A stretch of 64,000 nucleotides of DNA from Rhodosorus marinus CCMP1338. Its lineage: Eukaryota > Plantae > Rhodophyta. Positions 25,503 through 64,000 of the stretch are shown in pieces. Numbering within the stretch: position 1 is the first letter of the stretch; each line of letters starts with the position of its first letter. Position numbers and translations under genes: made by a program. A model generated the notes under the pieces. That model was given only the letters and a program-made list of their open reading frames with translations, searched no databases and was not told the DNA's origin. The stretch is from assembly GCA_029953675.1 (NCBI GenBank), contig JAMWBK010000008.1, positions 992,001 through 1,056,000 of the forward strand, in the 5' to 3' direction.

Positions 25503-26014
25503 AACCGATTCGAAAGATTCCCCCAATCTTTTCTAAAAAAACAAAAACCCACAATCTACTAATGGGACGGTATTCAGCGGAAAAGATCTATTTTTGGGTG
25601 AGAGGACGTCGCTTATTGCCTCTTAGCGTCACCTCCAGCATTTTGTTTCGATGAAGTTAGCCTTTTCAACGGCAAAAATGGGAGTTTGACCCTGCCAACA
25701 GGGATGGGTGAATTGAAGTCCTTTATCCGAAGCATGATCCTTCTTTGCTATAAATTTATTCGATAAAATTAGAAACTGTTTTTCGTTCTTCTGAATGCGA
25801 GACTGGATACTGAAGATTGGATCGGGAGCAGATGGAGATGGAGTGTATATGATATAATGTGAGCGGCTTTCCAGTCGCGGGGCTATCGCGATGATCGCTG
25901 AGGTATAGGTTGGGGAAGGAATCGTGCCCGTACCAAACAGTATTGCTAGTCGACGGCGTGAAGTGGTGGAGGAGAAGGAGGAGTTTGGGAGAGTCTCGCG
26001 CGCGTTTGAGAATC

Positions 26015-27853
26015 ATGTCTTTCCAGGAGCTTCCGTTTGGGCCGATCACCATCGACCCGGTTGTGTCGTCGTATGTACTGCTGCCATTCACTTGGATCCT
26101 GGCCGTCTCCCTGGTGGTAACGTTCTGGCAAGGTGGCTCTATGGGAGCAAACGACGTGTCTAATAGCTTCGGTACTTCTGTCGGTTCCCGGGTGCTGACA
26201 GTGAATATGGCCTGTATTCTTGCAGCCATCTTCATCACCCTTGGGGCTCTGGCCCTTGGCGGTCAAGTGGCAAAGACTGTGGGAAAGGGTATTGTTAACT
26301 ATGATGCTTTCAAACCTATCCCGGGGCTGTACATGCTTGGAATGATGACTTCCTCCATGGCCACTGGACTTTGGGTGTCGATAGCAACAGTATTGTCACT
26401 GCCAGTCAGTACTACTCACTCCATTGTGGGTGCGACCATTGGGTTTGGCCTAGTGCAGCTGGGAGCGAATGGTATTGACTGGTGGCCAGGAGTTGGTAAG
26501 ATTGTCATCTCCTGGATTGCATCACCACTGCTGTCCGGAGTCTTCTCGTCTGTCTTCTACGTGATCGCAAAGTATTGGATTGTGAAGCCGTTTAGGGATA
26601 CCCACAACTACGATCCAGAGTGGAGGCCGATTGCGCTGCGCAGGCAGAAAATCTATGTCTGCGTCGTTTGGTTCTTGGTGACTTTTACGGTGGTTATGTT
26701 CATCTGTACCACTGTGCGCGACGATTGGTATGGTCCCGCGGCCGGAATTGCGATCGGAGCCGCAGTTGGCGTAGCCCTGGTGGGATATTTCTTCCTTATT
26801 GATTTCACGAACCGGAGGCTAGACAACATGGAACTTCGAGGAGGATTTATTGAGGACGAAAAGGAGCAGCTGATTGATGAAATATTGAGAAACGAAGAGG
26901 ACGATGCCTTTGACTTGGTGAAGAACAATGATAGCGGAATGGCCACCACCGATGGAGCGAACATCATTGATGCCGGAGTTAAGAACTTTGACGATGAAGA
27001 TGCGGAGGCCCAGCCGCATGACGCCGGAAAATTCAGCTCGATGCCTGTCGATGAGGTATACCTCTCACGTAATGGCAGCACGATAACTATCGCCAGATTG
27101 AAGGAGGAGCGCAAGCCGAATATGTTGCAGAAGGTCGGAGGTTGGATCACGAAGTACCTTGGAGGGGGGGGAAACAAGAAGGATGTCTCTATGTATGCTC
27201 CTGATGACATCTGGGACCTGCAGCTGGAGAAGCGTTTTGCTGGTGGTCAGGTCATGTCTGCATGCTACGAAGCATTTGCTGCCGGGGCCAACGATATTTC
27301 CAACGCAGCCGGTACTCTGATGGCAGTCTACCAGACGCTCCAGACGGGTAATCTGGTGGACAAACCGGATCCTGTGTATTGGGCTCTGGCATACAGTTGC
27401 GTCGGTATTATCTTCGGTTTGTATTTTTTCGGGACCAGAGTTATGCACACCATTGGAGAGAACCTGACTGTCCTAACTCCCCTGCGAGGTCTTTGTGCGG
27501 AATTGGCCACCGCTTTCACCGTGCTAATTGCGTCGTACATTGGTATCCCGGTGTCCACGACGCATTGTTCGATAGGAGCCGTTTTGGCCGTCGGCTTCTT
27601 CGAGCCGGATGGGTTTAAGAAGGCGAATTATGGCTTGGTTGGAAAGATCATCTTGTCTTGGATCGTCACTCTCCCAATCGCCGGAGGGGTGTCGGCTTTG
27701 ATCTACGTGATTTGCCAAGGCGCGGTGACTGCTGCGCTTGGTTTCTACCCGAACGTCCTGCCGGGTGAGGAACAGTTGCCTTTCGCGATGACTTGCGATC
27801 CAGTTTTCCTCGAGAGTGCCACCTGCTCGTATTCGGAGTCAACCTCTACATAA
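26015..27853 (+). CDS. PiT / PHO4-family inorganic phosphate transporter, single exon (612 aa)
   Basis: Both PiT signatures (GANDVSNSFGTSVGS and GANDISNAAG), LPVSTTHSIVG / IPVSTTHCSIG, multiple TM helices and a central acidic loop. Confidence 0.97.
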   Translation: MSFQELPFGPITIDPVVSSYVLLPFTWILAVSLVVTFWQGGSMGANDVSNSFGTSVGSRVLTVNMACILAAIFITLGALALGGQVAKTVGKGIVNYDAFKPIPGLYMLGMMTSSMATGLWVSIATVLSLPVSTTHSIVGATIGFGLVQLGANGIDWWPGVGKIVISWIASPLLSGVFSSVFYVIAKYWIVKPFRDTHNYDPEWRPIALRRQKIYVCVVWFLVTFTVVMFICTTVRDDWYGPAAGIAIGAAVGVALVGYFFLIDFTNRRLDNMELRGGFIEDEKEQLIDEILRNEEDDAFDLVKNNDSGMATTDGANIIDAGVKNFDDEDAEAQPHDAGKFSSMPVDEVYLSRNGSTITIARLKEERKPNMLQKVGGWITKYLGGGGNKKDVSMYAPDDIWDLQLEKRFAGGQVMSACYEAFAAGANDISNAAGTLMAVYQTLQTGNLVDKPDPVYWALAYSCVGIIFGLYFFGTRVMHTIGENLTVLTPLRGLCAELATAFTVLIASYIGIPVSTTHCSIGAVLAVGFFEPDGFKKANYGLVGKIILSWIVTLPIAGGVSALIYVICQGAVTAALGFYPNVLPGEEQLPFAMTCDPVFLESATCSYSESTST

Positions 27854-33578: not shown

Positions 33579-35623
33579 ATGTTTTTATTGACTGATCAGA
33601 CCAATTTTGGTGTGGACGCGGTGTCCGGGATCTTTGAAGATGGCTATTTGGACTTCGTGCTGAAGGGCCTGACGATCCTTGCTGCTTTTGTCGTCTGGTG
33701 TGCTGTGCTGGAACAAGTGCGATATTATAAGCATGGATCGAGTCAGTTTCCTGGACCAGTCACTGTCGTTCCTTTTGTAAACTCGCTGTTGGAAATGGTA
33801 CTGCTGTTCCTCTGACTTTCGGTATTTGCATCGGAGTACTGTTGTCTCGGGTTCTATGTGCTGGTTTCTTTGTCTAACCCTTCAGCACGATCCTCTCCTT
33901 GGTTGTAGGTAAATGATCCAGAGGAATTCTGGAAAAGACAACACGCCTATGACGAGGAAGGAATATCGTGGAACGCTTTGCTGGGACGCCTCTCACTTGT
34001 AGCTACTGATGGCGATCTCGTCCGTAAGGTTCGTCTGTACCATAAGCTTATTATCGAAAGAGCCTCCAGGGAGAGCTGTTCTCTTGTTTCTGAAACGTCA
34101 ATTGCAATAATGTGAACAGATCCTGTCAAGCAACGGCCCGGACTCCTTCTTCATGGAGATTCACCCAAACGCGAAGCAGATTTTCTCGAGCGGCAACATT
34201 GCCTTGCTCTGGGGAGACGTACATAAGGCCTTGAGGAGATCTTTCTTGAACCTCTTTTCAAGAAAGGCAATGAACACGTATCTCCCGATACAGGTGCGTT
34301 TTAGCCGACCTCGGTGTTCGTGTGCCTCAAGTAGGTAGTGACTTAGTTGCTATTTCCTGATCGTTTTACAGGAGGGAACTTCCCGGGAGACAATCAAGGA
34401 GTGGATGGAAACTGTTCAAGGTGATGAAATAGACATCAGGCACCTTATCCGGCCGTTGACCCTGACGGTGTCGCAGAGGCTTCTGGTTGGAAACTACCTT
34501 GAGGACCCGAAAAGGTTTGGTAAGAAGCCATTCGAGAACTCCACACACTTTTGCCAAACAGCACTAGGCGGCTGCCCATCAAGGTTATGGTTATGTTTGG
34601 ACGTCACGAGGCTCGAAGAAGATCCATGCTGATAGTTGCCGTCCCATGGTTTTTGGTTTCCAGGGGATGACTACCAATATATCAACGATGGAATGCTGTG
34701 TTTACCGATTAATTTCCCCGGTACAACGTTGTACAAAGCTTGCCAGGCCAGAGTCCGTCTGGAGGATGAGCTGGAGAAAATTTCTGCCAAGTCGAAAAGC
34801 CTTGTGGCCGCTGGCAAGGAGCCGGACTGCTTGCTCGACTACTGGGCGGAGAAAATCATACAGGAGTGCAAAGAAGCCGAGAAATTGGGAGTCGAAGGAC
34901 CTGAATATGCGGCACCCAGGCGAATGGCTGAGACCATGATCGACTTCCTTTTTGCTTCCCAAGATGCGTCAACGGCCTCCTACACGTGGGCGGTAAAGCT
35001 TCTGGCGGACTATCCTGATGTTCTTGCCAAGGTTAGGGACGAACAGGAGAGAGTGCGCCCGGGAAATTCAGAGTTCACGGCTGAGAGAATGGAAAGTCTC
35101 ATCTACACGAGAGCGGTGGTAATGGAGATTCTGAGATACAAACCCCCAGCGATGACCATTCCTCAAGCAGCTCAGAAAACTGTCAACGTGACTGAGAAAG
35201 TGCGAATCCCTAAGGGCACTCTGATTTTCCCTTCGCTCTGGGCTGCCAGGAATCACGGGTGGACTAATCCTGACTGCTTTGATCCCGAGCGAATGATGCC
35301 TCATCGGGACGAGATGTTGAAGGTATGCTTGTCAATGGGTAAACGCGGAGATCCTCTCACGTCTTCAGCTCCTGAACTATGTTTTGGTTGCTCTATTTCT
35401 GCAGAACCGTGCCAACTTCTTGACCTTTGGAGCCGGCCCGCATTACTGCCCTGGAAAGGAGCTTGCGATCAGCAATTTGATCGTGTTCATCTCGTTGTTC
35501 TCAGTCCTCGCAGACTGGACACGGAGAGATACAATCGACTCTGATCGAATTTGCTATTTGCCGACCACGTATCCATATGATTGTCTGGTAACGATGGAGA
35601 AACGTGCGCCCGTGTCGTCATGA
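33579..35623 (+). CDS. CYP710: Cytochrome P450 CYP710 family (sterol C-22 desaturase, ERG5/CYP61-related), multi-exon
   Basis: N-terminal TM anchor plus FPGP, I-helix DFLFASQDAST, EILRYKPPA, FDPER and heme motif FLTFGAGPHYCPG; the start is approximate. Confidence 0.95.
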
Positions 35624-36764: not shown

Positions 36765-37514
36765 ATGTCTGACATGGAGGTGAATGAGAGTAAGAAGAGA
36801 GTGGCAGACGGAGTTGGTTTGAAGAGTATGGTTCAGTCTCATTTGGATCTTGGACAGAGGGAGGTGGGTGAGAAGAGGTGTGGTGAGTGTGGGATGGTTT
36901 ATTCTGTAGGAGTAGATGAAGATGAGAAAACGCACCTTGTGCATCATCGGGGAGAGGTTCTGAGTAGGAAAAGGCCTAGGCTTTCTAAATTGAACAGGTT
37001 TGGTAGGACTCAGTCGTTTGATGATGGGTTCGTCGTCAAGGTACCGAGGGAGTTCCACACTGAAGTGCTCGAAAAGGTTCTGTCGCGCGGGCGGTCAAGC
37101 ACAGTTCAGTCAGGTCCCCGCGCAGGAAAGAAGGACTCGAGCTATCGTGGCAATCTGTTTGTCTACGTTCAGGATTCGACAAGTCAAGCGGCCGCTGCCA
37201 TGCTCTCCCAAGTAGTGTCAGCCGAGCAGGTGGGAAGAAACCCAGTTTGGCAGAAACAGCTAAAGAGCACTCGGAAATCCAGTGAAACGCTTGAACCCTC
37301 TTATCGAGAAGTTCTCTCGTACCTGTCGCTGGATGCTTTATGGACCGTTGATCAAGGGCACAACGTCCAAATACCAGGCCGACTGCTGACCTGTGTCCGT
37401 GCTCATAGTTCTTACGGATCCATGTTCAGGAAGGATCAGTGTTTGATTGGACCGAGCATTCATCCAGAGACTGTACCGCTGCTTCGATCGATACTCACGG
37501 GTTTCGCAAACTGA
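36765..37514 (+). CDS. ECO1/CTF7/ESCO-like protein: C2H2 finger plus degenerate acetyltransferase domain
   Basis: QSHLDLGQ (PIP-like) then CGECGMVY..GVDEDEKTHLVHH zinc finger; the C-terminus LDALWT...RLLTCVRAHSSYG aligns to the Eco1 ISRIWV...KLIDVARENIVYG segment as I recall it. Confidence 0.8.
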   Translation: MSDMEVNESKKRVADGVGLKSMVQSHLDLGQREVGEKRCGECGMVYSVGVDEDEKTHLVHHRGEVLSRKRPRLSKLNRFGRTQSFDDGFVVKVPREFHTEVLEKVLSRGRSSTVQSGPRAGKKDSSYRGNLFVYVQDSTSQAAAAMLSQVVSAEQVGRNPVWQKQLKSTRKSSETLEPSYREVLSYLSLDALWTVDQGHNVQIPGRLLTCVRAHSSYGSMFRKDQCLIGPSIHPETVPLLRSILTGFAN

Positions 37515-41375: not shown

Positions 41376-43151
41376 ATGGTGGTTGGGTTTGCTCAGGGTT
41401 TGTGGCTCACAAGCTGTGCTGGACGGCATGTGGCACAGTGTAGCTTGAATAGAGTAGTTGGGGCGTGGCCCCTGGCTGTGTCCAGGCGCGGGTATGGCTT
41501 ACGGATGGCACTGAGTTCAGACGAAGATCACGCTGCCGCTGTTGAAGAAAAAAAGCAGCGTGCATTGACGAACCCAATGCCTGTGGTTAAGCTCAAGAAA
41601 GGGAAATCGAAGATCTTCTACGATGGCAACGCGATTGTTCTGGAGGGTGCTATCGACTGCGTCCTGGGTCCAGAAAGCAAGCTCGTGCCCGCCGCCATCT
41701 TGCCTCTGGTAGATCACAATTTTAGTGTGATTGGTACGTTGACTTTCCTGAAGATGTCTTACGCCAGTCCTGTGTCAGCCGCTCTAAACACCCGCATTTC
41801 ACACGTTATCAGGATGGGGAGTTTACAACCCTTCATCGAAGTTCCGATTTCGTATCCTGCATCACGTCATTCAAGATGGAGAGTTTGACATATCTCATCA
41901 GATCGACATGGTACATACGCTGACCTCGAAATTGAAGAGATCGATGCAGCTTCGACAGACGCTGAAGCTTCCCAGCGAGGTATTCAACCACTGTATCAGA
42001 CGTGTGTTTTTCTCGCTCTTTTGTGGTCTTGAAATTCACACGGATCGCTGCTTACGTCCTTTTCTCAAAGGAAACTGATGCGTTCAGACTTACGAACAGT
42101 GAAGGAGACTCTATCAGCGGGCTGATTGTTGACATTTATCGGAACGTTGCAGTGGTCGAGTCCTCTGCACTGTGGGTTGAGGTGCATCGGGAGCAAGTGG
42201 AAAGAGCGCTTCGTGCGACTCTACAAGACGATGTAGAGATTTTCTGGAGGCAGAGCAAGGATAAGCTTGTTCAGGAGGGAATGAGCAAAGAGGAATTGGA
42301 AACCGGTCCAAATCCATCGGAGGCAAAGCAGCAAATGGTGAAGGAAAACTGTGTTGAGTTTGAAGTCGCGCTTGGAGCAGGGAGCCAGAAAACCGGATTC
42401 TTTTGCGATCAGCGTGACAATCGCGCTCGGATTGCACAGCTGGCAGAGCAAAAGGATGTTTTGGACTGCTTCTCCTACACAGGAGGTTTTGCACTCCACG
42501 CTGCGGCCCATGGCGCAAAGAGCGTCACCGCAGTTGAATCATCGACAGCAGCGCTTAGCGTTGCGCAGAGAAATGCATCAAGGAATAGCGTCAATGTAGA
42601 CTTCAAAGAAGCTGACGTCTTCGACTTTTTGAAAGGTAGGCCCGTTGCGAAGAATCTCGTTGCAGTACATCGTCTCTCCATGCTGAACATTTAAGATCTC
42701 GTCTATAGGAGCCATCGAAAACGGCCAGAAGTGGGACATAGTTGTGATCGATCCTCCAAAGTACGCTCCCACGCAGAAAAGCCTCGAGCGGGCAAGAAGA
42801 AAATACCATGGTCTGAACAAGAGGGCTTTATCAGTGACGCGATCTGGTGGGCTCCTTTTGAGCTGCTCATGCAGTCGCGCTATGACAGGCAGTGGGAAGT
42901 GAGTTCGCGTCTTTGTCACATTCTGCCAAAAGGGACTGCGGACGTGCGTTTCGGAATCGAGGAGCTGACACCACCACTCGACTTTCAATTCGTTCAGGTT
43001 CGAAGATATGATTGCGTCAGCCGCTCAGGACGCCGGGAAACGTGTCACCTTCCTAGCCACCTTTGGAGCCTCTCCCGACCATCCAAACCACCCGTCGATG
43101 CCGGAAACCAAGTACTTGACAGCCACCCTAGTGGCCGTGTTTGACACTTAG
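41376..43151 (+). CDS. RlmI/YccW-like SAM-dependent rRNA methyltransferase (PUA domain), probably plastid-targeted
   Basis: Transit-like MVVGFAQGLW..., NSEGDSISGLIVD, QKTGFFCDQRDNR, VLDCFSYTGGFAL, DIVVIDPPK and GASPDHP...PETKYL. Confidence 0.9.
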
Positions 43152-43676
43152 CGCGTGAGGACTAATTTAATTTAATTTCCTCTTTCAGAAGTCAGGTGAC
43201 ATCACATCGCGATGCTTTGAGGTTGACTCGCCGCGACGCACTCCACCACGGACGAAGGTGTCACCTATAGGCATTTAAATTATTTTCCGGATGGCTTTCT
43301 TCGACCACAGCCTCGTTTCTGTAGGGGGGGTCCTGGGTTTACTCGAGGACCTGGAGAACTCGTGAAACGTATACACAACTGCGAAAGAAAATTTTGTTCT
43401 CCTCAGCAAGAATTTTCTCAGCGTACACTGAAGACAAAAGCCAGGTGCTGATGCCCTTCGTCCTCAAGGCCCGTTCTCGTTTCTATCCGAGCTTCAGAAG
43501 AGCGATATTGTTACATGATGTGATGGCGAGGAAAGCTGTTCCTGCTTGTTGCGAGTTTTCTGCTTTGATTAAGGTACACTGTTTCAGGAGTTCGACACAT
43601 GAGCCTTGCAGACGTGGTCCACGGCCTCGTTGCTCGAAGAACAGCTTTGCTCCTGGTGCAAGTTTGCTCATCCGTG

Positions 43677-46226
43677 CTACTCGCGTGGCGTCAGAGTATA
43701 GAATCTATTCGGCTTTCGCAAAGCCGTTTGACTAACCGGCGGCTTATCATCGCGAATTGCAGCCGCTATCCTTAGCTGTGCTTCAGTACAAAGCTTAAGC
43801 CTTCGCTTTTGATCTCCACTCAGTTGTCCCGTGGCGCAAACGTCGTCGAAGTCTTTAAACAGTCGATCAAAGGAGATCGAACTTGGCATCTCAGTCAAAG
43901 CGTCGTTTCCGTTGAGATCCTCCATTGCCAGATCATCTTCTCCGTAAGCCCAGTAGGTAACTACTTCGATTCCCTAGAAACATCCGTGAAGCTTCAACTG
44001 TTTAGAAAATGAACAGTACCTCCCTAGCAAAGAGATTGCTGTGAGAGCATGCCATACTTCGCGGTGTCTGGGCTCGCCAAGTACACTCATCGGACTAGTC
44101 TGAACCAAAAAGTCAGGAGGGACTAGTGAGCCTTTCTCCAGATTCAGATCAGTCAATGCTCGTTCTATCTGAGCCATAAAATAGGCGCAGTCGAGAAGTT
44201 CCTTTTCCTCGGGATCGCGACCCAGACAAACACCTTTCAAACCTATCGTGTCGTGGAGACTCCGAATGCTCGCGTGCTGGAGACCAAAGCACGACCACCC
44301 CACGGCATGCGAGAACCAACCTACGTTTCGTAGCAGCAGAAGCAAAGAGATACACTTTTGATAAGCGGGCATTTCCAATAACCAGGCCTCAAGTACCGCA
44401 AACGGTAACAAGCAAAATAGCTGCACTCTAGTACCATCAATTAACCCTGGATTGCTCAAATATAAATAGAGGTCATAAGCCTGAGCCGCACGATTGAGCT
44501 GCGGATCAGCCGCTTGCTCGAGAAGGACTGGCTTATGTTCTCCAGACAGCGTTTGCTTCACTTCCCCGAACAAGGCCTTTAGAAATGCCCGCCTCGCAAC
44601 CAAAACTGGGTGTTCGCTGACGGGAGGTTGCCCGACCCTTCCATGGCTGAGCGAAATCACTCGGCTCTCGCCAGTGTCTGCATGCACTTGTACGAACGCC
44701 GTGAGCACCTTCGAGAACAAACGTGGTTCAAAATTAGGTTTTCTTCACATGACGATACGACGACTAGTTACAGTGTTTCATATCTCGGTGCTGTAATAAC
44801 TCACTTCGTCACCCCTCAGCTGCTCATCTGCTCCAAGTAGTTCACTGAAGCGTGAGCAAACTGCTGAGGCAACAAAGTCCGGAATCTTAGACGCCTTGGA
44901 ATTTGAATTGCCTGCATTTGGAGTCCCCTCCTGGAGTTTCCCTGCACCCGCCAGCTTGAGCGCCGTTAGAGCGTTGCCGGCCGCTATTCGTCTAGCCAGC
45001 TTCTTGCTCTGACCAAGACCAGCCTCGTACTGTACACCATTAACTTCCACCGCCATCGTGAATGGAGGATTAACTCTACTACCGCTCAACTCTCTCCACC
45101 GCAGCTTCAGCTTTTTCTTATCCACGTACTCATGTAACTTGGAAACGGACTCAACGGACTGCTCTTTCGCCGGTAGAGTTTCATTCACTCTCGCATTGGC
45201 GGAGGACTCGGCAATGTCTGGCCCTCCAGATGGGAGGCTTACGGGTTCTGAACTGATCGCATTGTCTGCCAGGAGCTTTTCAATCGCCAGGTGCGACGCG
45301 TTTTGTTTCGCAAGCTTCTTTGACGTATCTCTTGCCGACGCAAGAGGCAACCCGTCCAACTCGATTGTGACAACAAAACAGCCCGTTGAAGCCTTCAATA
45401 GAACAATCATCCGTCTGAGAGCGTTTCCTTGGGATTTCTAGTATTGGTGCAGGCTTCTACCGTGTCTTTCACCTCCTCAAACTTGAAACTAAGCTTCTTC
45501 TTCGTTTTCTGTGAAAACTCGTTCAGAGCAGAGGTTGGATTCGCGTGTCTACAAGTCGAACAGAAGAACGCGCAAGTCAGTGCTGATTCGTGTGGACGGT
45601 ATGATTCCATCAGACGGAGCTTAACGACCATACTTTGAGAACGTTTCTCCCAGAATTGCTTGCGTAGTCTTCACGGGAGGATACTTCTTCTTGCGTATTG
45701 TTCGGCGCTGGTCCGTCGCTGCTGTAGGATGCTCCTCAGCGTCGTCTCCTGCTGAGGGTACTTGAACCACCACCTCTTCAAGTGAAAATTCGAAGGGGTG
45801 CTATTAGACTCCCCATCACGCACGATTAGCGTCTTCAAATGAAGTGTAGAGTAGAAAATTTCAACAACTCATAATGGTCTCGATTCGTACTTTTTGGATC
45901 GCTCCTGGGCCTCTTTCTCCCTGAATTTTTGAGAGTAGTTCCTGTATAACTTGGTACCTACTCACATAGATCCAATTCGAGGTAGTGCTGTCAACATCAT
46001 GGGCTCATGGAAGTCCCTTGATCCATACCACCTGGGTGCTACGAACCTGAGCAGGAACATCAAATGATTTGTTGTCCTCGCTTGCGACAGGTATCCCGGG
46101 ATCTTGGAAGAGAACTTCTGCTCTCAGATCTTGCGCTGTCTGCACCGTGGCAGGTAGGTGCAACACCTCGACGTCCTCTCCGCTTGTGATCATGCTCTCA
46201 CCTGCGGCAGGCTCTGATTCCATCAC
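43677..46226 (-). CDS. ADAR/ADAD-like protein: two dsRBDs plus an apparently inactive adenosine-deaminase (A_deamin) domain, multi-exon
   Basis: dsRBD1 NPTSALNEFSQK...|...FVVTIELDG...SKKLAKQNAS; dsRBD2 VSKLHEY...FTMAVEVNG...GQSKKLARRIAA; deaminase segments IPDFVASAVCSRF, VLTAFV, VISLSHG, EHPVLVARRAFLKAL, LYLYLSNP, WSCFGLQ, TYWAYGE, PSSIS..LF and DKP, in ADAR order and joined by phase-compatible GT-AG introns. The 5' end may extend to ~46.8 kb. Confidence 0.85.
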
Positions 46227-57937: not shown

Positions 57938-59062
57938 ATGAAGGTGCTCGACGGTGGTTTTTTTGGTCTGACATGTGTTGATGATGAGGCGGAGGTTGTT
58001 TTGAAAGGTGTTGGATTTGGGGGTTCAGACGGGGATGCGTTGCAGGAGAAGGTATTGAACTTGGTCAAGTTCGACGAGCACGAAAATCTGCTGAAGTATT
58101 TAGGTTGTAGGAGCGTCGAGGGAGAGATATGGCTGGTGAAGGAGAAGCAGGAACTATGGAGTACAAGCTTGTTGTCGACAAAACTCAGTGAGCCGGCGCT
58201 CGCGTCGGTTGCCAAGCAAGTTTTGGACGGTTTGGACTGGCTCCATGCGAATGGAATTACTCACGGAGACCTACATGCCAGCAACGTCTTGGTTGACATA
58301 AATGGTACCGTGAAGCTGACCGACTACGGAATCGCGGACGAGCTTCGGTCGGGAAAGAGCGAGGACTCTGTTAACGCTCATCCGCCTTGGTGGACTGCTC
58401 CAGAACTACTTGGGGCAGGCGTTGACGGTAAATCTTCAATCGCTGCAGATCTTTGGGCTCTTGGCGCGACCTTAATAGAACTTGCAGATGGCCAAGCCCC
58501 ATATTCGGACCATCATCCCGATCGACCGCGCCCAGAAAATCCTCAAACAGACGGCGCACCGGAGACGAAAGGCTGCCCACAGTTGAAAACTGCCCCGAAT
58601 TGGTCTACCTTTATGAACGAATTCATAGCTTGTTGCTCTGCCGAGCTTCCAAGCAATCGTTCGTCTCTCAAGAAGCTTCAAAATCACCGATTTCTGGAGC
58701 AAGCAAACGCTGAAGCGCTCGTGGCACGTCTACTTGAACTTGGAGAGTCTGCTAGATACCATCAGATCGAAATCGATCCATTCGATCAACTGGAAAAATT
58801 GTATAGAACCAACCAAACCCTGCGCATTCCGTTCGTTTCATTGGATTCGTTTGCTCCTGAAGTCTTCGCTCAGGAACTTACAGATGAGAGTCGGCTAGAT
58901 GACTCCTCTAGGGAGAGACCAGCGCTGAGTATGATACCGGCTCTAACATCTGCTTTTGAATACCACGAGGAAAAAGCATCGCTCATGCCGGATGCCAAGG
59001 ACCACTACGAGAGTAGGGCAGAAGAACTCAGCTCAGTGCTAAGAAACCTTTATCGTAACTGA
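57938..59062 (+). CDS. STE20/MAP4K (plant SIK1-like) protein kinase with atypical motifs
   Basis: Kinase subdomains HGDLHASN, KLTDYG, WTAPE and DLWALG; the C-terminal YRTNQTLRIPF...AFEYHEE...LSSVLRNL resembles the plant SIK1/MAP4K3 tail as I recall it; a 5' exon is possible. Confidence 0.85.
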   Translation: MKVLDGGFFGLTCVDDEAEVVLKGVGFGGSDGDALQEKVLNLVKFDEHENLLKYLGCRSVEGEIWLVKEKQELWSTSLLSTKLSEPALASVAKQVLDGLDWLHANGITHGDLHASNVLVDINGTVKLTDYGIADELRSGKSEDSVNAHPPWWTAPELLGAGVDGKSSIAADLWALGATLIELADGQAPYSDHHPDRPRPENPQTDGAPETKGCPQLKTAPNWSTFMNEFIACCSAELPSNRSSLKKLQNHRFLEQANAEALVARLLELGESARYHQIEIDPFDQLEKLYRTNQTLRIPFVSLDSFAPEVFAQELTDESRLDDSSRERPALSMIPALTSAFEYHEEKASLMPDAKDHYESRAEELSSVLRNLYRN

Positions 59063-63263: not shown

Positions 63264-64000
63264 ATGGGGTCTCTGTTGAGATCCGAGGACATGACTAAGC
63301 TTCAAATTGTCTTCGATGAAGTTGCGGCTCATGATACTGTTGACGAACTGGGGAAGACAGGGATGTTCGAGTTCGAAGATCAAAACGAGGATATTTCGGA
63401 CTTCCAACGGCATTTTGCACCGAACATTCGACGATGTGAGGAGCTCCAACGCCGCCTCCGCTTCCTCGCCGAGGAAATGAAGAAGCTCGACTTGGAGCCC
63501 GATGATGACTACACTCAGGTGCCAGAGGAGGGCTTGAGGTTTGACAATTTGGAAAGCCTTTTGGAAAAGCTCGAGGCGAATATTCAAAGCCTTAACATCA
63601 ACTGTAGTCAGTTAGAAGACAATCACAACACGCTTGTAGAACAGAAGGTTGTACTTGAGAAGGGTGCAGAGTTCTTCAAGAATGCGCCGGTCGTCACCAA
63701 GTCTTCCTATGGTGCAACAGATGCAATTGTTAGTCTCTCCTCTACCATGGAGGCTTTGGGAGCTCAGAAAACATTATCCTTTCGGTTAGCGCCCAGAAAA
63801 GAATCTGATTCCCGAACCCCAGACTACGTAACCCCGAAGTTTGTTGTTGACATTGACTCGTTGTGTCTAGGCAATCTGGAAAGTCTGGAGAAGAACTGCT
63901 GCTTAATCAGCAGTCGGTCTCTGTAGGAACCCCTGATCTTCTGAACACTACTATGGGTCTTCTTACCAAGAGCAAGGTGCAAGCCTTCGATCGCTTGCTG
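63264..64000 (+). CDS. VPH1: V-type ATPase V0 subunit a (VPH1/ATP6V0A), 5' part only
   Basis: LLRSEDM, ELGKTGMFEFEDQN, FQRHF...IRRCEELQRRLRFL; the next exon reads MGLLTKSKVQAFDRLL and runs off the window. Confidence 0.93.

Follow-up and report, generated by a model that had tools for sequence, protein, structure and literature searches.

A probable non-catalytic protein of ADAR architecture in the nuclear genome of the red alga Rhodosorus marinus

Introduction

According to two broad surveys, the ADAR and ADAD proteins are a metazoan innovation in which dsRBDs were added to ADAT1 (PMC4323055, PMC9989829), and ADAT1 itself is universal in eukaryotes (PMC4323055). A sequence-only reading of the window, the whole stretch of 64,000 nucleotides analysed here, likewise regarded ADARs and ADADs as animal proteins, in line with this published view, and had proposed that a locus of the window, taken to be red-algal DNA, encodes a catalytically dead protein with two dsRBDs and an ADAR-type deaminase fold. 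This locus raises the question of whether a protein with the layout of an ADAR exists outside animals, what is left of its deaminase domain and where it came from.

The red-algal host was borne out: the window is nuclear DNA of Rhodosorus marinus CCMP1338 on a 2.1-Mb contig. In a red alga, ADAT1/Tad1, the tRNA A37 deaminase of all eukaryotes, is the only member of the A_deamin family that is expected. No description of a non-animal protein combining dsRBDs with an ADAR fold was found in a literature search, and the UniProt/public annotation of the protein studied here reads only 'DRBM domain-containing' or hypothetical.

Results

Gene structure and expression

The ADAR-like gene NDN08_006187 lies on the minus strand at 43677..46223 and consists of eight exons (46223-46047, 45957-45891, 45775-45634, 45548-45461, 45392-44805, 44708-44435, 44320-44058 and 43973-43677) encoding 631 aa. 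The introns are GT..AG throughout, with lengths of 68-115 nt, and the span of the rebuilt model is identical to the NCBI gene span. The MMETSP transcript product P0002 is equal in length to the gene model (631 aa) and colinear with it. All exons were found joined in the MMETSP transcripts P0002, P0014 and P0015 of a related/sister strain, which shows that, at least for the sister strain, NDN08_006187 is both expressed and spliced. The separation of dsRBD and deaminase exons onto different transcripts, which had been considered earlier, was not observed, as products P0002 and P0014 from the related strain each join both sets on a single transcript.

The range first given for the gene, 43677-45790, was correct in that the gene is real and located on the minus strand, but its 5' end is at 46223, with two further exons upstream. 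These exons 1-2 (45891..46223, minus strand) encode a stretch that is acidic and then basic (KRPRSD); a Pfam scan detected no domain in them, and a Z-alpha remnant was sought there and not found. The N-terminus of the 631-aa protein is disordered.

The stretch around 44300-44430 that had been suspected of being intronic corresponds to a real intron at 44321..44434 on the minus strand, 114 nt long, whose length keeps the reading frame and which contains no stop codon. This intron is removed in the spliced ortholog transcripts P0002 and P0014, is matched in position by an intron of the relative L003, and sits exactly at the ~60-residue ADAR segment that is missing here (first Zn Cys, 5' binding loop and base-flipping loop). 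For exons 6 and 7, the NCBI splice model, which keeps the intron 44434-44321 and excises the coding stretch 44320-44246 as an intron, was rejected in favour of the transcript-supported one. Intron retention was observed in some transcript isoforms.

dsRNA-binding domains

Pfam PF00035 (dsrm) matched the protein in two stretches with 83.6 bits against a gathering threshold (GA) of 23 (E 1.4e-23), and the two dsRBDs with intact KKxA(K/R) motifs that had been read from the sequence were thereby confirmed. dsRBD1 (45270..45541, minus strand, residues ~132-199) contains KKLAK at 45320-45306 and is split by the intron 45460-45393, and dsRBD2 (44949..45149, minus strand, residues ~240-306) contains KKLAR at 45005-44991; neither of them has the loop-2 His of the GPxH motif that is canonical for dsRBDs. 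In a search of PDB sequences, the best match of dsRBD1 was the dsRBD of poxvirus E3 (E 5e-8), followed by ILF3, ADAR2 and PKR. dsRBD2, which aligns to each of the two dsRBDs of ADARB2, shows the strongest constraint in the protein, with a dN/dS of 0.06.

Relationship of the C-terminal domain to ADAR deaminases

The degenerate ADAR-type deaminase domain covers 43866..44885 on the minus strand (residues ~328-569) and is interrupted by the introns 44804-44709, 44434-44321 and 44057-43974. For the single window protein, PF02137 (A_deamin) remained below threshold, with 12-15 bits against a GA of 27 and E values of 0.013-0.035. In the window protein, the partial match covered profile positions 25-80; in P0012, a relative found in a different transcriptome, it covered positions 150-279 (E 4e-4). 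Every family member was under the GA, the best score being 20.3 bits for P0012. With the single C-terminal domain as query, phmmer recovered no relevant PDB sequence, and an exhaustive single-sequence phmmer search of 1.84 billion representatives gave family members only, with no ADAR and no ADAT1, indicating that single-sequence sensitivity is insufficient and that the ADAR link needs profile or fold comparison. Word-index searches of proteins, run with the C-terminal domain on its own or with the family alignment, returned nothing or P0013 only; they are treated as unreliable, as P0001, P0002 and P0012 exist.

The sub-threshold Pfam scores, the empty phmmer search of PDB and a UniProt label that names only a DRBM-domain protein would all suit a chance resemblance to A_deamin, the dsRBDs being followed by an orphan domain of no relation to it. 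This explanation is very unlikely, since profile, profile-profile and fold searches all led to ADAR domains only, colinear over ~240 residues. With the profile of the four-member family, hmmsearch against PDB recovered Hydra ADAR (E 1e-8), ADAR1 (E 1.2e-6) and ADAR2 (E 1.9e-4), i.e., ADAR deaminase domains only, and the next match had an E of 1.1. In the HMMER check proposed earlier, dsrm was recovered and A_deamin stayed below threshold with a single sequence (14-15 bits), ADARs being reached only by the family profile. In hhalign, the comparison with ADARB2 gave a probability of 95.4% (E 1.9e-8) over 242 columns.

Two AF2 models, for which the P0013 fragment was placed in the alignment, were of modest confidence (pTM 0.67 and 0.63, mean pLDDT 58-60). 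In Foldseek, their top 22 and top 26 matches were all ADAR deaminase domains, the best E values being 1.5e-9 and 1.1e-11 and TMq lying at 0.52-0.64. APOBECs followed at an E of ~1e-2, so that, at E values of 1e-9 to 1e-11, the proposed fold check led to ADAR domains alone. The training of AlphaFold included ADAR2.

In a search with the whole protein, ADARB2 proteins were the sole non-self matches, and a single colinear BLAST HSP with animal ADARB2 extended over dsRBD2 and the linker and on into the deaminase domain (33% identity, 174 columns). Among the segments that had been described as colinear with ADAR2, VLTAFV, VISLSHG, EHPVLVARRAF, LYLYLS, WSCFGLQ, TYWAYGE and SSIS were placed at the corresponding ADAR positions by the HMMER profile search and hhalign, and DKP was not. 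The architecture of two dsRBDs and an ADAR-type deaminase fold is supported by Pfam, the family profile, hhalign and Foldseek together, and by sequence profile and predicted fold the C-terminal domain is homologous to the ADAR deaminase domain, whose scaffold it retains.

Loss of the active site, the RNA-contacting loops and the IP6 pocket

At the position of the catalytic His-Ala-Glu, the protein has His-Pro-Val (44604..44612, minus strand), and these three residues are invariant in 4/4 family members. The Zn-ligand His (44612-44610) is kept at exactly the codon named by the sequence-only reading, and the position of the proton-shuttle Glu is occupied by Val (44606-44604), also as claimed. 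Both Zn-ligand Cys are absent, in agreement with that reading. The first (PCG) falls in a deleted or replaced segment, and the second is Trp or Tyr in all members; in the window protein it is Trp447 (44318-44316), at the start of WFSHAVGWSCFGLQ (44277..44318, minus strand), where W-x-x-x-G-L-Q is the best-conserved ADAR-like motif. About 60 residues are gapped in the hhalign alignment, corresponding to a deletion of the base-flipping loop and the 5' RNA-binding loop, and the distance from YLYLS to the Trp/Tyr at the second Cys position is only 7 residues in the window protein, 10 in P0012 and 12 in L003. The losses of catalytic residues and loops are common to all family members.

A search of all frames of the locus turned up no alternative exon with HAE, PCG or C[ST]DK, so a restoration of the Glu and Cys residues by alternative splicing, which had been put forward earlier, is not supported by any exon with HAE, PCG or SCSDK. 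An HMM built from ADARB2 only detected no other deaminase over the window, which is a weak test because the same HMM barely detects NDN08_006187 itself. At the position of 'VNWTVGD...ASRLC' in ADAR2, the family has a conserved acidic motif of its own, TYWAYGEDDLAMEDLNGNDA...SSISFD (43866..43958, minus strand), which was aligned by hhalign and whose invariant columns are W216, D222, L223, E226, D227, G230, D232, A233, S239, I241 and S242.

The RRAFLK segment (44577..44594, minus strand) carries two family-invariant Arg equivalent to R400/R401 of ADAR2. With the IP6 ligands of the ADAR2 structure 1ZY7 as reference, the family retains the RR pair and the Trp, K376 is replaced by an invariant Glu, K519 by H/N/D and R522 by G/L. 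The alignment stops at domain residue 259, short of the C-terminal IP6 ligands, which P0012 and L003 do not conserve. Of the IP6 contacts claimed earlier, the RR pair was upheld, but the terminal Lys ('DKP = EKP') was aligned by no tool and is missing in the relatives; most ligand positions appear to be lost, and the comparison does not support a retained IP6 pocket.

The loss of the catalytic Glu, both Cys ligands and the loops supports the view that the deaminase domain is catalytically dead, and from its sequence the protein would be unable to deaminate. A nucleic-acid deaminase still working with a non-canonical active site could be argued from the retained and invariant His, the conserved core and a Cys of L003 near the first-ligand position (STCDE), but it would have to operate with Val at the Glu position in all members, Trp or Tyr at the second Cys position and the whole base-flipping-loop segment deleted, and is regarded as extremely improbable. 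No deaminase-fold enzyme is known to work without the Glu plus two further Zn ligands. The window protein also differs from ADAT1/Tad1, which belongs to the same deaminase-fold family (Pfam A_deamin) and is recognised as a stand-alone, catalytically intact A_deamin protein with HAE and Cys and no dsRBD, whereas two dsRBDs and no active site are present here.

Conservation of the family and its genomic neighbourhood

A dN/dS of 0.22 across 265 codons of the dead deaminase domain shows that the domain is under purifying selection. Three or more divergent lineages, 31-33% identical, have conserved the domain, and between them motifs, intron positions and synteny are also conserved, the intron positions being shared with L003. 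The gene located tail-to-tail with NDN08_006187 encodes a PUA_3 and SAM-dependent methyltransferase protein (41581..43151, plus strand). This convergent neighbour also accompanies P0012, and the pairing recurs in transcript contigs of Rhodosorus.

If the gene were a functionless artefact of annotation or a pseudogene in decay, this would account for the lost catalytic residues, the mis-spliced NCBI model and the intron-retaining isoforms. The probability of such an explanation is minimal, given an intact 631-codon ORF over eight exons, expression in the sister strain, a dN/dS of 0.22-0.30 and the conservation of motifs, intron positions and synteny at 31-33% identity, and the pseudogene reading is already largely refuted.

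The family looks small, with only three clusters among 1.84 billion representatives. Neither the JGI metagenome contigs nor the viral contigs of IMG/VR yielded relatives when scanned with family patterns, and Foldseek of the C-terminal domain against viral structures gave no match at E <= 1e-3. P0012 has an ADAR1-like layout of an N-terminal Z-alpha, two dsRBDs and a deaminase-like domain. Its Z-alpha (PF02295) scored 34.4 bits against a GA of 21 and matched the ADAR1 and E3 Z-alpha structures in PDB (E 1.4e-7), with the key Asn replaced by Met; in the window protein, neither a profile match nor a remnant of Z-alpha (PF02295) was found.

Discussion

Comparison with known proteins and origin of the family

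Among known proteins, the p150-type ADAR1 of Metazoa (Z-alpha, dsRBDs and deaminase) shares its domain order with P0012, and the window protein corresponds to two dsRBDs and the deaminase-like part. ADAR1 was matched by both the family profile and the fold search, and the Z-alpha of P0012 is most like those of ADAR1 and E3. Compared with ADAR1, the red-algal family lacks the catalytic Glu, the Cys ligands and the flipping and 5' loops, has two dsRBDs instead of three and occurs in a non-animal host; in addition, the window protein has no Z-alpha, and that of P0012 has lost its key Asn. The poxvirus E3 (Z-alpha plus dsRBD) and PKR-type proteins resemble the family as catalysis-free binders of dsRNA or Z-nucleic acid; in PDB, dsRBD1 is closest to a dsRBD of E3, and the Z-alpha of P0012 matches that of E3 as well, but E3 has no deaminase-like domain.

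The origin of the family had earlier been put down to either an independent Tad1 fusion or an ancient relic. Horizontal transfer had been omitted, and the data lean against an independent fusion because P0012 combines Z-alpha, two dsRBDs and a deaminase-like domain and because the ADARB2 HSP is colinear. In a convergent fusion, a red-algal ADAT1/Tad1 paralogue would have gained dsRBDs, joined in one lineage by Z-alpha, before losing catalysis, with no special tie to animal ADARs. The raw material would be at hand, since ADAT1 is universal (PMC4323055), dsRBDs are promiscuous domains, and the deaminase-like domain is too divergent for its nearest clade to be assigned. Against this, three ADAR1 domain types would have to be assembled in the order of ADAR1, the HSP with ADARB2 is colinear over dsRBD2, linker and deaminase, and Z-alpha and dsRBD1 are nearest to ADAR1/E3/PKR-type domains; the convergent route is accordingly rated as unlikely. 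On these sequence comparisons, a common ancestry with animal ADARs is most likely, whether it goes back to ancient descent or to horizontal transfer. A narrower proposal, in which the intron-bearing and syntenic red-algal lineage would descend vertically from a pre-metazoan ADAR and now serve as a catalysis-free dsRNA/Z-RNA binder in an undescribed dsRNA-handling pathway, is possible though doubtful.

Proposed role

Taken together, NDN08_006187 is probably a nuclear, expressed and non-catalytic member of the ADAR architecture, a dsRNA binder sharing ancestry with ADARs. The animal ADAD1/ADAD2 (Tenr), ADAR3/ADARB2 and ADR-1 of C. elegans likewise combine dsRBD(s) with a non-editing deaminase domain, and are thought to use the pseudo-deaminase as a structural, dimerisation or partner-binding module. 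The presumed common mode is the binding of RNA or partners with no catalysis, and the likeness to ADAD is one of architecture. The active site has been taken apart much more completely here, with ~60 residues deleted, than in these animal proteins; ADARB2, although the best non-self match of the whole protein, keeps HAE and both Cys. We know of no active ADAR partner in red algae.

By analogy, the most likely role suggested by the sequence is that of a non-editing dsRNA-binding protein, and a function as dsRNA sensor or scaffold, as had been proposed, is a reasonable inference. The dsRBDs would bind long A-form dsRNA, the pseudo-deaminase domain may act as a structural, dimerisation or partner-binding module, and endogenous or viral dsRNA could in this way be bound, shielded or handed over.

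Significance

The significance of the finding is tempered, as the protein is almost certainly no editor and the family looks small. A red-algal family of ADAR layout is of importance since proteins of the ADAR type are regarded as having been invented by animals. As the family is conserved and expressed, and one member (P0012) even has the Z-alpha typical of ADAR1, the architecture would be older than animals, or have moved horizontally between very distant eukaryotes, possibly via viruses, or have arisen twice. In this family, nature also offers a case in which selection has maintained an ADAR fold although its active site is completely gone, which bears on the basis of the non-catalytic functions of ADAD, ADAR3 and ADR-1. 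If pre-metazoan descent is true, the architecture of Z-alpha, two dsRBDs and ADAR fold would not be confined to animals.

Gene structure and splicing

The ADAR-like gene NDN08_006187 comprises eight exons at window 46223-43677 (-), with introns of 68-115 nt, and encodes 631 aa; the model was built by three-frame reading and GT..AG intron placement, and its upstream extension was guided by database proteins. The locus is annotated as 'hypothetical protein' by NCBI (NDN08_006187/KAJ8902867.1) and as 'DRBM domain-containing protein' in UniRef. KAJ8902867.1 keeps the in-frame, stop-free 114-nt intron 44434-44321 (-) and excises 44320-44246 (-), which codes for WFSHAVGWSCFGLQHASIRSLHDTI, and the best-conserved ADAR-like motif WSCFGLQ is thereby lost. 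The ortholog P0002 (631 aa; 84% identity to the partial window model by the search tool, 82% by codon alignment) and its isoforms P0014 and P0015, all MMETSP transcripts of a related Rhodosorus strain, were spliced as in the eight-exon model. The NCBI model is mis-spliced, and the ortholog transcripts give the correct junctions. The intron suspected at ~44300-44430 in the sequence-only reading is real, since 44434-44321 is spliced out of the related-strain transcripts, and the dsRBD and deaminase-like exons are joined on one mRNA there, as that reading had required.

Two intron-retention isoforms of the sister strain (P0014 and P0015) were also observed. In one, a 69-nt intron within dsRBD1 stays in the mRNA and is read in frame, adding 23 residues between strands; the other keeps the preceding intron, so that the protein stops after 132 aa; the corresponding window introns are 45393-45460 and 45549-45633 (-).

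Double-stranded RNA-binding domains

Both proposed dsRBDs were recovered by Pfam (dsrm x2, combined score 83.6 bits, gathering score 23), and the RNA-binding motifs KKLAK and KKLAR are both present. For dsRBD1 (window 45270-45541, -), the nearest solved structure by sequence was a poxvirus E3 dsRBD (E 5e-8), followed in the PDB ranking by ILF3, ADAR2, PKR, and ADAR1, and this match would be compatible with an ADAR1/PKR/E3-type dsRBD.

Homology of the C-terminal domain to ADAR deaminases

The expected A_deamin match was found in part: the single sequence matched profile positions 25-80 and stayed under the threshold (14-15 bits, E 0.013-0.035). A phmmer search of the single window domain against PDB sequences gave no match. 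Exhaustive phmmer of the 306-aa domain against 1.84 billion cluster representatives returned three proteins only, namely the ortholog P0002, the more distant relative P0012 (577 aa, 33% identical, E 7e-24), and the 302-aa fragment P0013 (E 6e-8). P0013 lies on the genomic Logan contig L003, whose gene was spliced by hand and is broken by introns at the same positions as the window gene. Two word-indexed searches, with the C-terminal domain and with the family alignment, did not retrieve the protein annotated in the window or its 84%-identical ortholog; because of these false negatives, the absence of the family elsewhere leans mainly on the exhaustive phmmer search. Very few members of the family are present in current databases.

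A family profile of the four C-terminal domains (alignment A1, four sequences only) was searched against all PDB sequences and matched ADAR deaminase domains, with nothing else below E 1: Hydra ADAR 9dp5 (E 1e-8), human ADAR1 (1.2e-6), and human ADAR2 (1.9e-4), every match consisting of two colinear stretches. In addition, hhalign matched 242 columns to an ADARB2 alignment, from the N-terminal helix of the domain as far as SSIS, at 95.4% probability and E 1.9e-8. AF2 models of the window and P0012 domains, with alignment input restricted to family sequences, reached modest confidence (pLDDT 58 and 60, pTM 0.67 and 0.63). In Foldseek searches of the PDB, the top 22 and top 26 matches of these models were all ADAR deaminase domains (E down to 1.5e-9 and 1.1e-11, TMq 0.52-0.64; APOBECs next, E about 1e-2), in line with the predicted deaminase fold, with the caveat that AF2 was trained on ADAR2. 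Judged from profiles and models, the homology to the ADAR deaminase is real and visible solely at the family-profile or fold level.

State of the active site

In every alignment (family-profile search, hhalign, and BLAST), EHPVLVARRAF sits on ADAR CHAEIIARRAF. The Zn-ligand His is retained exactly where it had been placed (codon 44612-44610, -), the catalytic Glu is Val (44606-44604, -), and the Ala of HAE is Pro; the resulting His-Pro-Val does not vary among the four family members. Directly past the YLYLS strand, ~60 ADAR residues are absent, a segment that in ADAR2 structures carries the 5' binding and base-flipping loops together with the first Cys ligand. The second Cys-ligand position is Trp (Tyr in P0012), followed by the well-conserved W-x-x-x-G-L-Q motif, so both Zn-ligand Cys are gone, as originally noted. 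Alternative splicing, considered earlier as a possible rescue, cannot restore the active site because HAE, PCG, and C[ST]DK are encoded in no reading frame of the locus. The ~60-residue segment may have been lost through exon loss or intronisation. Introns were seen at this site in two lineages (L003 954-1101, window 44321-44434).

Of the residues noted as IP6-contacting, the RR pair is kept; the terminal K rests on 'DKP = EKP', an equivalence that no tool aligned, in a tail of low predicted confidence that is missing from P0012 and L003. The other IP6 ligands of the ADAR2 structure 1ZY7 include a Trp, which is retained here, and K376, K519, and R522, which correspond to an invariant Glu, to H/N/D, and to G/L, respectively. 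Retained IP6 binding by the pseudo-deaminase domain is not supported by these residues.

Conservation and genomic context

Nei-Gojobori dN/dS between the window CDS and the sister-strain transcript CDS (L005) was 0.30 for the whole CDS, 0.06 for dsRBD2, and 0.22 for the dead deaminase domain (265 codons). Family-specific motifs, such as the acidic W-x-x-x-[DE]-[DE]-D-L-x-x-E-D-x-x-G-x-D-A ... S-x-I-S, persist at 31-33% identity, intron positions are kept, and a PUA_3 + SAM-methyltransferase gene lies tail to tail with the ADAR-like gene both in the window and beside P0012. A decaying pseudogene is excluded by these dN/dS values, motifs, introns, and shared neighbour. Because motifs, intron positions, and the tail-to-tail neighbour are conserved, P0012 is regarded as an ortholog from a related organism, and contamination was ruled out.

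The two convergent genes share a single transcript contig in three transcriptome assemblies (contigs L002 and L005-L007), with a stop-to-stop gap of 76 nt in L002 (2046-2121); the window intergenic region is 43152-43676. Since they sit on one transcript contig with this short gap, their 3' ends may overlap, and natural antisense dsRNA could then form at the very locus that encodes the dsRBD protein.

The host contig JAMWBK010000008.1 (2.1 Mb) belongs to the chromosome-level nuclear genome GCA_029953675.1 of Rhodosorus marinus CCMP1338, a red alga of the class Stylonematophyceae; the window's single-exon PHO4 ORF occurs on it without any difference. The neighbours are ordinary eukaryotic genes (eRF1, RINGv, aconitase, P450, ESCO-type zinc finger, kinase, V-ATPase subunit), and the contig does not come from an animal. 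The genes encoding a PHO4 phosphate transporter (single exon, 25910-27853, +), a cytochrome P450 fragment (34636-35544, +), an ESCO-type acetyltransferase zinc finger (36765-37514, +), a protein kinase (57938-59062, +), and V-ATPase subunit a (63264-63926, +) are without link to the ADAR-like gene.

A relative with a Z-alpha domain

P0012, the product of an MMETSP transcript (coding at L002 312-2045), carries an N-terminal Z-alpha at residues 13-69 (Pfam PF02295, 34.4 bits against a gathering score of 21), whose PDB matches were ADAR1 and poxvirus E3 Z-alpha domains (E down to 1.4e-7). The signature Tyr, Pro-Pro, and Trp are retained, and the key Z-DNA-contacting Asn is Met. This is a Z-alpha domain in a non-animal protein, apparently of a red-algal relative, and it may still bind Z-form nucleic acid. 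The window protein shares with P0012 a single HSP covering residues 114-567, and no Z-alpha or remnant was found in the window protein. The Z-alpha of P0012 suggests that the ancestral family protein dealt with nucleic-acid conformations of the type that ADAR1 handles.

Origin and proposed function

The sole non-self matches of the whole window protein in a word-indexed search were animal ADARB2 proteins, and the best BLAST HSP with one of them is colinear across dsRBD2, the linker, and the opening third of the deaminase domain (33% identity, 174 columns). An independent fusion lacking ADAR ancestry appears unlikely given this shared junction and the domain order of P0012, identical to that of ADAR1: Z-alpha, two dsRBDs, and deaminase domain (dead in P0012). 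For a family of ADAR ancestry, ancient descent and horizontal transfer are both candidate origins. The C-terminal domain had no viral relative among IMG/VR viral contigs or, by Foldseek, among viral structures.

Two surveys (PMC4323055, PMC9989829) describe ADAR/ADAD proteins as a metazoan innovation missing from choanoflagellates, filastereans, fungi, and plants, and a Z-alpha survey found a few non-metazoan Z-alpha proteins, none ADAR-like (PMC11298590). Our searches of the literature turned up no account of an ADAR-like protein in a red alga. The window protein is not classed as an ADAR because it lacks the catalytic Glu, Cys ligands, and loops of enzymatic members and scores below the Pfam threshold.

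These results show a conserved red-algal family of ADAR-type architecture, expressed in the sister strain, whose deaminase domain is without catalytic apparatus. The protein would work without catalysis, binding dsRNA via its dsRBDs, and the pseudo-deaminase scaffold may have a structural role, mediate dimerisation, or bind partners, the same non-catalytic mode as proposed for ADAD1/2, ADAR3, and ADR-1. What is new is a non-animal, non-catalytic version of the ADAR-type architecture.
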